Sequence record: OP310984.1
Reading direction: 5' to 3' (one strand)
DNA: 64,000 nucleotides
Positions 58,578-61,945 of this stretch are shown here, in pieces. Numbering within the stretch: position 1 is the stretch's first letter; each line of letters begins with the position of its first letter. Below the pieces are notes generated by a model, which made no database searches, was not told the DNA's origin, and saw nothing but the letters and a program-made list of their open reading frames with translations. Made by a program: the position numbers and the translations under genes.

Positions 58578-58653
58578 TCCGTGATAGCTCAGTCGGTAGA
58601 GCAAGTGACTGTTAATCACTGGGTCCCTGGTTCGAGTCCAGGTCACGGAGCCA
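58578..58653 (+). tRNA. tRNA-Asn (anticodon GTT), copy 1
   Basis: AGTGA-CTGTTAA-TCACT arm, encoded CCA; identical to 61870-61945. Confidence 0.95.
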
Positions 58654-58659
58654 TATTCT

Positions 58660-58684
58660 AAAGAGTAGCTTCGGCTACTCTTTT
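58660..58684 (+). terminator. UUCG terminator after the tRNA-Asp/Asn pair
   Basis: AAAGAGTAGC-TTCG-GCTACTCTTT. Confidence 0.8.
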
Positions 58685-58737
58685 ATGTTGCCATGGGTTA
58701 TCTTATGAATTAAAATGATTTACTTGAGAGCACACTC

Positions 58738-59751
58738 ATGTTTGAATTACTATTAGCAACTAGTGGTAAAATAAAGCCAGTTGAATTAGTACAATATATC
58801 GGTTATGAAAAAATAGCTGACCTGGATATTCCGTTACATGGTTCTATCCCTTATATTTGGAACGATAAACTATTCGTTAAGGGTGGCGGTACAGATGTTA
58901 GTTCTAGTGATCCAGGATTACGCAGGTTTAAATTAGATGGTACGTTTGAGAATAATAAGAATTTAAGCAACTACATCTATCATACGAATCCAGCGCAAGA
59001 CTCACGAACTGGTAGAGTTTATTTAATCAACGGTAGGTCTAATGGTAGCTGGAGTTCTAGAGTGGTCCATGCCATAGATGCTTCTGCGGAGACTATAACT
59101 AATCTTGGTTGGAGCACTCCTCGTGGGAACTATGGTAACTCCACGGTATTTGACGAAGATAACAACAGAATTTACGTCCAATTCCACGATAGTAATCAGT
59201 TCGGTTATTACACAACCGATGGCGTCTATCATAACAGCCCGAAAGGCTTTCCTGCTGCTAGTCTAAGTGGTGCTTTTATATTCAAACATAAAGGCTACAT
59301 TTACGTGATGGGTGGATGGGGATCCAGTGTTGCATCAAATCCGGATCACCTGGCGAAATTCGATGCTGGGACAGCAATGACGACAATCATGAGAATGTCG
59401 ATTTATACACAATTGTGGGAAGTGTACGATATATTACCTACCGAATACCATGGTGGTAACCAGGGCGCCGGTAACTACCATGAAGGTATCTTCAGCTATA
59501 TTAGCTGGAGTGGTAGTAAACTCGGTGCGGTTCGCTATGATGTGTCTGGTAAAAGATTTATTCGTTTTGATACGGGTATTAGCTATCGCAACGCGACCGG
59601 TGTGGTTGGTAATAAAGGAGAGCTGTATCTGGTTGGTGGATGTTCAATTCCGTTGGGCTCGACTAACCCACCGTTCGGTAGAAAGGCAGAAACGAAGACA
59701 GAAATATACAAGTTCATCCTTCCTGCTCCACTACCACCAAGTGATAAGTAG
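58738..59751 (+). CDS. Kelch-like beta-propeller protein 1, probably virion-associated
   Basis: 337 aa; blade motifs LFVKGG, VYLING, IYVMGGW, LYLVGG; N-terminus MFELLL. Confidence 0.7.
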   Translation: MFELLLATSGKIKPVELVQYIGYEKIADLDIPLHGSIPYIWNDKLFVKGGGTDVSSSDPGLRRFKLDGTFENNKNLSNYIYHTNPAQDSRTGRVYLINGRSNGSWSSRVVHAIDASAETITNLGWSTPRGNYGNSTVFDEDNNRIYVQFHDSNQFGYYTTDGVYHNSPKGFPAASLSGAFIFKHKGYIYVMGGWGSSVASNPDHLAKFDAGTAMTTIMRMSIYTQLWEVYDILPTEYHGGNQGAGNYHEGIFSYISWSGSKLGAVRYDVSGKRFIRFDTGISYRNATGVVGNKGELYLVGGCSIPLGSTNPPFGRKAETKTEIYKFILPAPLPPSDK

Positions 59752-59903
59752 GTGTTACGTACACCAATGCTAGAACCTCACAGAGGGGCAGGGTATCTTA
59801 GTATTGGTAACAGTCTTTACACCTTATAAAGGCAGCCATTTGGCTGCCTTTATGCCGTTACCGTTTATCTTATGACTTAACTGTATTACTTGAGAATATA
59901 CTC

Positions 59904-60911
59904 ATGTTTGAATTACTATTATCACCAGATATAGGCGAAGAGTTACCCTTGGTTGGATTTAATGAAATTATTAAATTAGGTGATCTACCTGTAGCGTTAG
60001 CTGGTACAATGTCATATGTGGATGGAAATACACTGTATGTTGGATCTGGTCATCATACTGAAGGACAAACAGCTGCAACTGTGTTCAGACGTTTTACCAT
60101 ATCGCCATTTGCCGATATAGGTGCAACTGCTTCTGGAACATTCTTACCAGGGGTATCTTTAGGATTTGGGACATTACATAAGAATAACTTTATTGTTTAT
60201 GGCGGTATTACTGGATGGAACTCGGCTGGTAATGGTGGTACGGGAACATCTAACTTTATACAACATTTTGATATAGCTACAGGCAATAGGGTTGAGCGAT
60301 ATAGTGGTCCCGTACCACTTTGGGGCACAGCCTCCGCATCAGATGGTAATGATCTTATTCTATGCGTTAACCCAATTGGCGTAAACGCAATGCGATTAAA
60401 ACCATCAAGTAAGTCTTGGCTTAGCGGGCAAGACTATTCAGGTGGTGCTCGTTCAGGTCAACAGTTATTCTTTTATAATGGTTACTTTTACCATTTTGGT
60501 GGTTGGGATAATACAAAGAACATACCTAATCTTGAAGTTTATCGATATAATGCAACTACCTTAATATGGGAGCAAACACCTTGGATGATTATACCTGCTG
60601 ATAAAGGAACAATCTGGCAAGGTAATGGTTATGTAGATGGGGACTATTTTAATTACCTTAACGCTGTTGATGTCGGCGGTGTAACTAAAATGTTTGCACA
60701 ACGTTTTAATATTAGGCGCCGGAAATGGGCTGAACCATTTGAACTAGGTATCGGATTCCTTAATATTTCATCTATAGCTAAAGGTCCGGATAATAGCATG
60801 ATCATTGTAGGTGGATCTAAAATGCCAGTTGGTGGTGGAGCATATATGTTGAAAAGCCAATTGTTATCAGGTATCTATCAGGTAAAACTAGCACCATTAA
60901 TCATTGATTAA
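59904..60911 (+). CDS. Kelch-like beta-propeller protein 2
   Basis: 335 aa; LYVGSG, FIVYGG, FYHFGGW, MIIVGG; N-terminus MFELLL. Confidence 0.7.
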   Translation: MFELLLSPDIGEELPLVGFNEIIKLGDLPVALAGTMSYVDGNTLYVGSGHHTEGQTAATVFRRFTISPFADIGATASGTFLPGVSLGFGTLHKNNFIVYGGITGWNSAGNGGTGTSNFIQHFDIATGNRVERYSGPVPLWGTASASDGNDLILCVNPIGVNAMRLKPSSKSWLSGQDYSGGARSGQQLFFYNGYFYHFGGWDNTKNIPNLEVYRYNATTLIWEQTPWMIIPADKGTIWQGNGYVDGDYFNYLNAVDVGGVTKMFAQRFNIRRRKWAEPFELGIGFLNISSIAKGPDNSMIIVGGSKMPVGGGAYMLKSQLLSGIYQVKLAPLIID

Positions 60912-61195
60912 AATAATAATATTTATAACTATTTAGATAATTATACTGGCACGATGATATTATGTAAGAGTACTATAATAAAGTATTCTTAAATCTATCC
61001 ACTAAACACACTCGGTGGTAGAACTTATTATAGAGTGTGTCTAAATGCCAGGGGTTTGCCACCCCTGGTTATATTCATTGTTACTATTATAAATTCATTT
61101 ATAGATGAGAAAAGGTTTTATCACCTTTTCAAAATCGGCATTTAATTCCAGTTAAAAAACTGAATCTATGCTACATTGTAATAAAGGAGTCTATT

Positions 61196-61708
61196 ATGAC
61201 TAACTCTAATCCGTTTGTAAGAACTATTGTAAAGTACCAAGATATCCTAGATGCTTTAATTCAAAAAACGAATGAGAACTGGGTTAATTATCGATCTAAT
61301 TCTATTGGTCATATTGTTATTCGTGAATACAGGACTGTTGGATTATTTGTAGGTCGGCAATGTGGTAGTACAACTGCATTGATTGAGTTTGCTAATCGTC
61401 ACCCTGGCGAATGTCTAGCTGTATTTGTAGAAGATAAAATTAAACAGGCTGTACTGGCTAAGTTCCAGAATGCTAAAGATAATATTGTTTCTTGTTTAAT
61501 TACACACCAACTCCGCAAATATATTCATCAACCTGAAGAATCATCTATTCAAAAAGATATTAAAGAAGAATTAATATCGTCTGTAAAATATATTCTTGTT
61601 GACAATGCCTCATTTAATCTGAACCTACGCGGTATCACTGATAAAGAATTTAACCAGTGGGTTGCAGATACTTTTGGTACAGAGGTAATGGTGGTTCGTT
61701 TTAGTTAG
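61196..61708 (+). CDS. single-domain degenerate P-loop protein
   Basis: 170 aa; VGLFVGRQCGSTTALIEF (Walker A with Lys replaced by Ser), YILVD Walker-B-like strand. Confidence 0.55.
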   Translation: MTNSNPFVRTIVKYQDILDALIQKTNENWVNYRSNSIGHIVIREYRTVGLFVGRQCGSTTALIEFANRHPGECLAVFVEDKIKQAVLAKFQNAKDNIVSCLITHQLRKYIHQPEESSIQKDIKEELISSVKYILVDNASFNLNLRGITDKEFNQWVADTFGTEVMVVRFS

Positions 61709-61773
61709 AATTAGTAACTTTGATAGTTTCTAATAAGATTAACTACACGTTATTTACATAATGTCATAACAAG

Positions 61774-61808
61774 AAATAAATAATACTCAGATTGTAATAA
61801 TATGTAGT
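61774..61808 (+). promoter_or_regulatory. promoter of tRNA-Asn copy 2, identical to the chmA upstream promoter
   Basis: 35/35 match to the reverse complement of 5546-5580. Confidence 0.65.
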
Positions 61809-61869
61809 TATTACATATCTATATTAGGTTGTCAGTAACTCATCTCTAATATAAAATCGCCATAATTCT

Positions 61870-61945
61870 TCCGTGATAGCTCAGTCGGTAGAGCAAGTGA
61901 CTGTTAATCACTGGGTCCCTGGTTCGAGTCCAGGTCACGGAGCCA
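61870..61945 (+). tRNA. tRNA-Asn (anticodon GTT), copy 2
   Basis: 76-nt exact duplicate of 58578-58653. Confidence 0.95.

Follow-up and report, generated by a model that had tools for sequence, protein, structure and literature searches.

We analysed a 64,000-nucleotide stretch of sequence record OP310984.1 (hereafter the window), in which two identical tRNA-Asn genes enclose a short block of protein genes in the tRNA cluster of a jumbo phage. Over positions 56400-64000, the window matches Pseudomonas phage Koomba boorn-mokiny kep-wari Wadjak 2 (OP310984.1; hereafter Wadjak 2), a member of the genus Phikzvirus, at 100% identity, and these positions are 99.3% identical to phiKZ over the aligned parts. 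The Wadjak 2 genome has seven tRNA genes in a single cluster (Leu, Pro, Met, Asp, Asn, Asn, Thr), of which Asn is the sole one to be doubled. Both tRNA-Asn(GTT) genes were called on the plus strand by ARAGORN and Rfam (Table 1) and are members of the tRNA class, scoring 70.3 bits each with Rfam RF00005, for which the cut-off is 29. The anticodon gtt is placed at position 34 by ARAGORN, and direct reading of the sequence gives a discriminator G and an encoded CCA. The exact direct repeat is 77 nt long (58577-58653 and 61869-61945) with a spacing of 3292 bp, which confirms the identical, direct-orientation pair described in a first-pass annotation of the window.

Between the tRNA-Asn copies lie two genes, here named K1 and K2, and a homologue of phiKZ gp297. 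The repeated part is 77-82 nt of tRNA alone; the rest of the 3.2 kb is unique except for a 61-bp leader repeat. Tandem segmental amplification of the tRNA locus was ruled out, there being no head-to-tail unit repeats. Pfam and PHROG scans of the enclosed and flanking proteins and the GenBank annotation all lack an integrase or recombinase, in agreement with the first-pass annotation, to which no integrase had been visible. The features of the locus in the window are already annotated in GenBank. What is new is how the tRNA layouts relate to each other, the cross-genus source of K1, and the nature of the "second tRNA-Asn" of phiKZ.

Table 1. Features of the tRNA-Asn locus, in window coordinates.
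Feature	Position	Strand	Remarks
15-mer TGTAATANTATGTAG, four sites	5547-5561, 56234-56248, 58460-58474, 61793-61807	-, +, +, +	Sequence count
Promoter-like element of the tRNA-Asp/tRNA-Asn copy 1 unit	58444-58474	+	TACT box and 15-mer TGTAATACTATGTAG
tRNA-Asp(GTC)	58495-58571	+	6 nt 5´ of tRNA-Asn copy 1; ARAGORN/Rfam
tRNA-Asn(GTT) copy 1 (site 1)	58578-58653	+	76 nt, CCA encoded
Terminator hairpin after copy 1	58660-58683	+	Stem AAAGAGTAGC, then TTTTATG
gp298-type leader (with TATG) and first 7 codons (MFELLL)	58698-58758	+	Left repeat copy; left K1 crossover zone
K1	58738-59751	+	337 aa, Kelch-type beta-propeller
Untranslated remnant of a longer PS119XW-type gene	59752-59824	+	73 nt, 24 further codons; homology ends at 59824
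Terminator hairpin after K1	59828-59851		Stem AAAGGCAGCC; resembles copy 2 terminator; in K1-bearing phages only
Second leader variant and first K2 codons	59865-59924	+	Right repeat copy; identical to the PA7-Y12 gp298 leader
K2, homologue of phiKZ gp298	59904-60911	+	335 aa, PHROG 19623
gp297 homologue	61196-61708	+	170-aa alpha/beta protein
Promoter-like element of copy 2	61777-61807	+	TACT box and 15-mer as for copy 1
tRNA-Asn(GTT) copy 2 (site 2)	61870-61945	+	Same sequence as copy 1; uninterrupted allele
Terminator hairpin after copy 2	61992-62013		Stem AAAGGCAGC, then TTTATGTCGT

Both tRNA-Asn genes appear to be complete, separately transcribed units, each with a phage-type promoter motif and a terminator. 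Transcription of phiKZ is independent of the host RNA polymerase and is done by the phage's own polymerases (PMC4666361, PMC10914365), and its tRNAs depend on the non-virion RNA polymerase (nvRNAP; PMC4666361, PMC10914365, PMC12571901). Sigma-70-like promoters number 39 in the window against 34.5 +/- 4.7 expected, which is not above chance, and were rejected on this count and as irrelevant given the phiKZ polymerases. The phage-type 15-mer TGTAATANTATGTAG, which has a TATG core, occurs at four window sites where 0.11 are expected and probably marks one phage promoter class. A TATG core is typical of nvRNAP promoters (PMC4666361), and a TACT motif has been described at about -22 (PMC8244752). 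The predicted start of the copy 1 unit is the G of TATG at 58471 and that of copy 2 is at 61804, 66 nt before the tRNA, with the TACT box approximately 22 nt upstream in both cases. An RNA contig of a phiKZ-type nanopore run has its first nucleotide at 58471, which slightly favours the predicted position. Because the 15-mer with TATG and a TACT box lie just upstream, copy 2 very probably has its own phage promoter. The promoter of its own that copy 2 had been credited with thus holds as a phage-type motif and falls as regards sigma-70-type sites, which are at chance level. The 15-mer site at 56234 lies 5´ of the gp302 homologue (56443-56895), called a defence inhibitor in a transposon preprint (bioRxiv 10.1101/2025.11.23.690004). 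The near-identical terminators first noticed at 59825 and 61989 correspond to the hairpins after K1 and after copy 2, which do have a common stem, AAAGGCAGC, and a common tail, TTTATG(C/T)CGT. As boundaries of a cassette they were rejected, being part of a genome-wide family of hairpin-plus-TTAT terminators with approximately 22 distinct instances in the window, though the unusual stem is common to both.

Aligned from end to end, K1 and K2 share 23% identity (BLASTP E 9e-9), and both match PHROG 19623 (E 2e-10 and 1e-219, respectively). A profile of the gp298 family finds solved Kelch propellers among PDB sequences (E 1.7e-15), and the AlphaFold model of K1 is all-beta, with a predicted local distance difference test score (pLDDT) of 84.5; single Pfam Kelch models remain below their cut-offs. 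From the profile match and the all-beta model, the gp298 family (PHROG 19623) is assigned to the Kelch beta-propellers, and the earlier description of two Kelch-like genes stands. The family is tiny, with 13 matches in 1.8 billion representative proteins. K2 is 99% identical to the phiKZ-type gp298 genes. In phiKZ, gp298 is reported to be a Kelch/NanM-like, low-abundance virion protein on which adsorption to some wild and clinical isolates of P. aeruginosa depends. The phage needs it to adsorb to PA1032 and Env201, and on PAO1 it is dispensable, with 28 transposon insertions tolerated and non-essential neighbours (bioRxiv 10.1101/2025.11.23.690004).

Our comparison set comprised 55 Pseudomonas jumbo-phage records, 47 of them phiKZ-like, and 17 loci were read in detail. 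K1 is present in three of the 55 records and in three ENA metagenome scaffolds from one study. It lies on a 1166-bp segment that is missing from Bobae-type genomes, and the segment ends inside the 61-bp, 85%-identical leader repeat, not inside the tRNAs. The gp298 leader with TATG and codons MFELLL is common to all family members in both genera. The nearest relative of K1 is the N-terminal half of a 631-aa double-Kelch protein of Pawinskivirus PS119XW (92.6% nucleotide and 94% amino acid identity), with a ratio of nonsynonymous to synonymous substitution rates (dN/dS) of 0.13. The K1 stop is TAG where PS119XW reads TGG, and the homology runs 73 nt past this TAG and stops at the terminator. Judged by sequence, K1 is a truncated copy of a Pawinskivirus-type double-Kelch gene, hence of cross-genus origin, and is the one true insertion between the tRNA-Asn copies, specific to its lineage. 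It is best read as an added adsorption or host-range module that would provide a second gp298-like factor. The idea of an accessory cassette bracketed by the tRNAs is to this extent sound, in that a real insertion exists between the copies, and wrong in its limits, since K2 and gp297 are genus-wide and K1 ends in the leader and not in the tRNAs. The Pawinskiviruses themselves have 618-631 aa fusions of a gp298-like propeller to a second, more canonical Kelch propeller, followed by tRNA-Tyr(GTA) (fusion genes at L013:4592-6487 in PS119XW and L016:6081-7937 in PA1C). A short gp298-like gene is found in PA1C as well, which makes paralogue pairs a recurrent feature of Pawinskivirus.

The locus is highly variable between near-identical phages, with tRNA genes as recurrent breakpoints. 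The layout of the locus, the tally of its variants, their breakpoints and the families of the proteins are shown by the data themselves. Site 1 is intact in 29 phages, has become a 5´ half followed by an 87-nt tRNA in eight (Churi, HUST_1, fMGyn-Pae01, T2P group), is missing in PA7-Y12, was lost together with tRNA-Asp in 124.01 and 2PS, and in kmuB breaks off after the anticodon. An intact site 2 is found in 21 phages and a split one in nine (phiKZ, Brmt, NK1, 6B, 9Ps-7B, 9-Ps-8B, 14Ps5-6, 124.01, 2PS), while approximately 12 have no site 2 (the group of fnug, KTN4, AttikonH10 and Wadjak 1; FBPa36; ANB1; the T2P group; kmuB). Throughout, gp298 and gp297 are kept in 46 of the 47 phiKZ-like records, whether Asn copy 1 only, copy 2 only, both or neither is present; single-copy genomes that have both genes are fnug, KTN4, FBPa36 and T2P (site 1 only) and PA7-Y12 (site 2 only). 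The empty form that had been thought possible among relatives, one tRNA-Asn without the cassette, is absent from the 55 records, kmuB being the one ambiguous exception. A different rearrangement is seen in SL2 (L008:5648-5730), where a deletion equivalent to window positions 57112-58540 has taken away tRNA-Met, the genes gp301-gp299 and the greater part of tRNA-Asp. Its breakpoint falls where the T-arms of tRNA-Pro and tRNA-Asp resemble each other, and what remains is a Pro/Asp chimera not recognised by ARAGORN any more. It is the second case of recombination between tRNA genes within the cluster.

In phiKZ, the 76-nt tRNA-Asn gene is interrupted by an insert of approximately 770 bp between the equivalents of window positions 61905 and 61907, directly after the anticodon. 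Insertion is precise, both sides sharing a 2-nt TA overlap (61905-61906). Within the insert, a 9-nt linker is followed by an 87-nt tRNA that has a long variable arm, the anticodon GTT and a G as discriminator (53.7 bits with Rfam). A terminator and the HNH gene gp296 make up the rest; gp296 matches PF13392 (E 1e-9) and has no solved relative by sequence and no NCBIfam match. Rfam recognises nothing but tRNAs in the insert of phiKZ and in the window, and the presence of a group I intron or another known RNA was rejected on this basis. The same site is intact in the window and in Bobae and filled by the insert of approximately 770 bp in phiKZ, Brmt, 6B and others, so that the window holds the uninterrupted allele of a putative homing target; the genome of the window has no homologue of gp296. 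The left junction (5´ half, CGATTTCAT, 87-nt tRNA) recurs at site 1 of Churi, HUST_1, fMGyn-Pae01 and the T2P group, in versions that have neither the HNH gene nor the 3´ half. The pair of tRNA and HNH gene is conserved in Pawinskivirus (84%) and Psa21 (67%), always behind a truncated tRNA 5´ half. Such a pattern would be expected if a free-standing endonuclease module had homed, with gp296 as the putative cleaving enzyme. The second "tRNA-Asn" of phiKZ accordingly reads as a different tRNA, which would have arrived with the HNH gene inside a split tRNA-Asn, and not as a copy of the first.

The module-borne tRNA, 87-90 nt in length, has a class II shape, a D-arm like that of bacterial tRNA-Tyr, anticodon GTT and discriminator G, and is annotated as plain tRNA-Asn (L002:5851-5937 in phiKZ, L007:6015-6101, L012:4485-4571, L016:4506-4592, L017:4003-4090). 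In every case it either accompanies the HNH gp296 module or derives from it. The split tRNA-Asn halves of PA1C (L016:4461-4497 and 5239-5277) have matching acceptor-stem changes, T5C with A68G, and decayed anticodon-stem ends beside the insert, as would be expected if the module had inserted independently into a target that had diverged before, or if the stem had co-evolved long ago in the unsplit gene. In Psa21, a phage of P. syringae (L017:3950-4002), the long-arm tRNA-Asn and HNH gene follow a different truncated 5´ half, with acceptor TGGTAAA and a normal D-arm. Finally, 124.01 and 2PS (L003:3595) show a precise loss of window positions 58495-58678, comprising tRNA-Asp, copy 1 and most of their terminator, in a genome with the HNH module at site 2.

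Two relatives resemble complementary parts of the window. Up to 58755, a part that includes site 1 and the leader of gp298, fnug is 99.6% identical to the window; from the gp298 gene on, the identity is 85%, and site 2 is missing. PA7-Y12 has in its left part the Pawinskivirus-like order Leu-Pro-gp300-gp299.1-gp299-Met (80-92% identity) and no site 1, and from 59865 is 99.0% identical to the window through gp298, gp297 and site 2, its leader matching window positions 59865-59905 exactly. On these identities, the layout of the window is composed of a fnug-type left arm and a PA7-Y12-type right arm that would have been joined in the conserved gp298 leader. The two sites also trade alleles: SL2 has the T-loop "AC" allele at site 1, and Churi, HUST_1 and fMGyn-Pae01 have it at site 2.

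We consider it reasonably probable that the locus is a tRNA-cluster exchange hot spot with a mosaic two-copy layout, in which K1 is an insertion and copy 2 is the empty target of a module. The locus forms the right-hand part of a cluster of seven tRNA genes, between which non-essential host-interaction genes are scattered, and the cluster would serve co-infecting phages as a place of exchange. The duplication would not have come about by insertion of the intervening DNA. Instead, the source layouts Asp-Asn-gp298-gp297 (as in fnug, KTN4, FBPa36 and T2P) and Met-gp298-gp297-Asn (as in PA7-Y12 and, in split form, Pawinskivirus PA1C) would have given rise to Asn-gp298-gp297-Asn by a single homologous crossover in the gp298 leader or gene, and sequence exchange between the tRNA-Asn copies would afterwards have kept both identical. 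The truncated Pawinskivirus-type propeller K1 would have entered via the gp298 leader and may act as a second virion adsorption factor, probably shifting the range of P. aeruginosa strains adsorbed. Copy 2, and potentially copy 1, would be an empty target of the relatives' module of long-variable-arm tRNA(GUU) and HNH gp296, which would insert immediately 3´ of the anticodon of the 76-nt tRNA-Asn and bring a replacement tRNA. The order of these events and the copy-to-copy conversion are what we infer from the variants.

Several points weigh against this reconstruction. Its direction is unrooted, and the fnug-type and Y12-type layouts are equally derivable from a two-copy ancestor by replacement. 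The perfect 76-nt identity is a weak argument for conversion, as orthologous copies in other phages are nearly invariant too. In comparison with its closest relative, K1 is cut short by a stop codon, and its expression and its inclusion in the virion are presumptive, and positions 59825-59864 are without an assigned source. We also infer the cutting of the tRNA-Asn gene by gp296, and phiKZ keeps an intact copy 1 beside the HNH gene, which is awkward if gp296 cuts every 76-nt tRNA-Asn gene. A more far-reaching proposal, which we put forward tentatively and with more doubt than confidence, is that the 76-nt tRNA-Asn gene is the homing site of a self-compensating module, which comprises gp296 and the structurally different long-arm tRNA(GUU), destroys the resident tRNA-Asn gene by inserting 3´ of the anticodon, and takes over its function. 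If so, a phage such as this one, which lacks gp296 and has both copies uninterrupted, would be at double risk in a mixed infection with phiKZ, and the tRNA cluster would be a weapon in phage-phage competition, dragging along the host-range genes K1 and K2 by co-conversion.

The arrangement could also be seen as a locus that expands and contracts, the 77-bp direct repeats looping out the 3292 bp with K1, K2 and gp297 and leaving one tRNA-Asn, in a mixed population of cassette-plus and cassette-minus genomes. The repeats are perfect and direct, and the deletion product should be viable on PAO1 because gp298 is non-essential there, but a clean excision product was found in none of the 55 records, and we regard this course of events as unlikely. 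The closest approach is kmuB (L011:5484-5520, corresponding to window positions 58578-58614), in which tRNA-Asp is followed by a tRNA-Asn that ends exactly after the anticodon. The half is joined to DNA 13.3 kb downstream (OP310984.1 position 257915), and the breakpoint is the same nucleotide as the insertion point of the phiKZ HNH module. Here the upstream flank of site 1 is joined to a 5´ tRNA half with the A28 allele, otherwise seen in site-2 halves only, and gp298 and gp297 are gone. This may reflect Asn-Asn recombination together with a 13-kb deletion, yet looping-out requires the 13.3-kb deletion as a second event, and kmuB is a single, possibly misassembled record. In PaZh_1 (L018:4484-4528 and 6579-6623), both copies have lost 31 nt comprising the T-arm and the acceptor 3´ strand, and ARAGORN finds no tRNA-Asn. 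The same deletion in both copies would imply exchange between them, but the record is flagged UNVERIFIED, and the double deletion is either copy-to-copy conversion or an assembly error. Exact patterns of the recombinant junctions were not found in IMG/VR or the JGI metagenomes, where positive controls detect only one and zero phiKZ-like loci, respectively, which leaves the search without power. Assembled contigs of 24 runs had no deletion or circle joint, but such contigs break at the repeat and cannot show rare forms.

It is rather improbable that the second tRNA-Asn is a dosage adaptation, kept for translating an AT-rich genome in a GC-rich host or for offsetting tRNA-cutting host nucleases. 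Asn makes up 6.2% of the codons in the long open reading frames of the window, two thirds of them AAT, and nearly every relative keeps at least one tRNA with a GTT anticodon in any layout. Selection acting on how many tRNA copies a phage carries has been described before, as have homing endonucleases linked to tRNAs (PMC13096335), the dosage reading being akin to the case of T6, where amplification of tRNA-Tyr allows escape from Septu. Set against this, many successful isolates are single-copy, and kmuB, as well as PaZh_1 if its record is correct, are without any tRNA-Asn. Dosage would account for retention of the copy and not for its origin or placement, and the arrangement is dispersed, with no tandem amplification. 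We give hardly any credence to a tRNA-anchored integrative element, that is, a mobile island that inserted in tRNA-Asn and duplicated its target, which was the first of the two suggestions of the first-pass annotation. Its sole support is the superficial picture of a gene block between direct tRNA repeats. The Pfam and PHROG scans and the GenBank annotation give no integrase or recombinase in or beside the element, and the repeats are complete 76-nt genes including their 5´ ends and not a partial 3´ att core. Genomes with the left copy only or the right copy only likewise have gp298 and gp297 of the bracketed block, from which it follows that the 3.2 kb was not delivered by a tRNA-anchored insertion. 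Such an insertion predicts cargo-less single-tRNA genomes, and the observed pattern is the opposite, with no empty site among the relatives apart from the ambiguous kmuB.

The exchange hot spot that we favour has parallels in known systems. In T4 and T6, the SegB endonuclease gene lies among phage tRNA genes and is polymorphic in presence between near-identical phages, neighbouring tRNA markers are co-inherited and rearranged, and tRNA copy number varies at the locus (PMC2330249, PMC13096335). SegB is a GIY-YIG enzyme, whereas gp296 of the relatives is an HNH protein (PF13392) with putative cleavage activity, and the window has the uninterrupted target only and no endonuclease. Moreover, the relatives' module sits inside a tRNA gene and brings a replacement tRNA of different architecture, and the duplication is dispersed rather than tandem. 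Group I introns in tRNA anticodon loops (PMC3984707) resemble the phiKZ-type interruption in position and in encoding a homing-type endonuclease. However, the phiKZ-type insert matches no intron model and has its own tRNA and terminator between decaying flanking halves, and nothing of this is in the window. With tRNA-integrated genomic islands, the locus has in common a gene block between direct repeats of tRNA sequence; unlike them, it has no integrase, duplicated full-length tRNAs, genus-common genes between the repeats, and no empty site. The nearest likeness for the protein genes is the exchange of adsorption-factor or host-range cassettes of the gp298 type, K2 being the orthologue and K1 a full-length paralogue of the same PHROG with its own leader and terminator, and the use of conserved boundary sequences recalls the exchange of tail-fibre modules. 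The window differs from the usual gp298 loci in its tandem paralogues, which are found in three isolates only, and in that K1 derives from Pawinskivirus as a truncated form of a two-propeller protein, with a presumed function.

All in all, the locus is an ordinary but instructive case of modular exchange in a phage tRNA and host-range region. Phages of the phiKZ type are leading therapy candidates against P. aeruginosa, and a natural isolate with a cross-genus second gp298 paralogue points to a simple modular route to changed adsorption specificity, with the conserved gp298 leader as the exchange point. The reference annotation of phiKZ may be re-read in that its second "tRNA-Asn" appears to be HNH-borne. 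Competition between jumbo phages that is driven by an endonuclease could be put to the test at this tRNA locus, which is also a reminder that direct repeats of tRNA sequence in a lytic phage need not signal integration.

The remaining features of the enclosed block concern gp297 and the spacer that precedes it. The gp297 homologue has an invariant loop, GRQ(C/S)GS(T/S), and an LVD(N/D)AS strand. The loop departs from the Walker A pattern GxxxxGK[ST], being one residue short and lysine-less. The best matches of the structural model (pLDDT 77) are DEAD-box, RadA and KaiC domains, at weak template modelling (TM) scores of 0.44-0.49 and E >= 5e-3. The label of a degenerate P-loop gene is apt as a description, given the lysine-less Walker-A-like loop. 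The spacer between K2 and gp297 (60912-61195, plus strand), 5´ of gp297, matches no Rfam family and folds at -70.7 kcal/mol (z -4.77 against shuffled sequences). Four hairpins are kept in phages that are 80-85% identical, and four base pairs covary, all of which upholds the structured leader seen at first pass. One of the four hairpins, at 61047-61069, is terminator-like. An AT-rich element of 23-26 nt (TTTATTATAGTACTCT...) is repeated, in inverted and direct orientation, in three intergenic regions (60960-60982, 63620-63646 and 63927-63952), and one of its copies forms the first hairpin of the K2-gp297 spacer.

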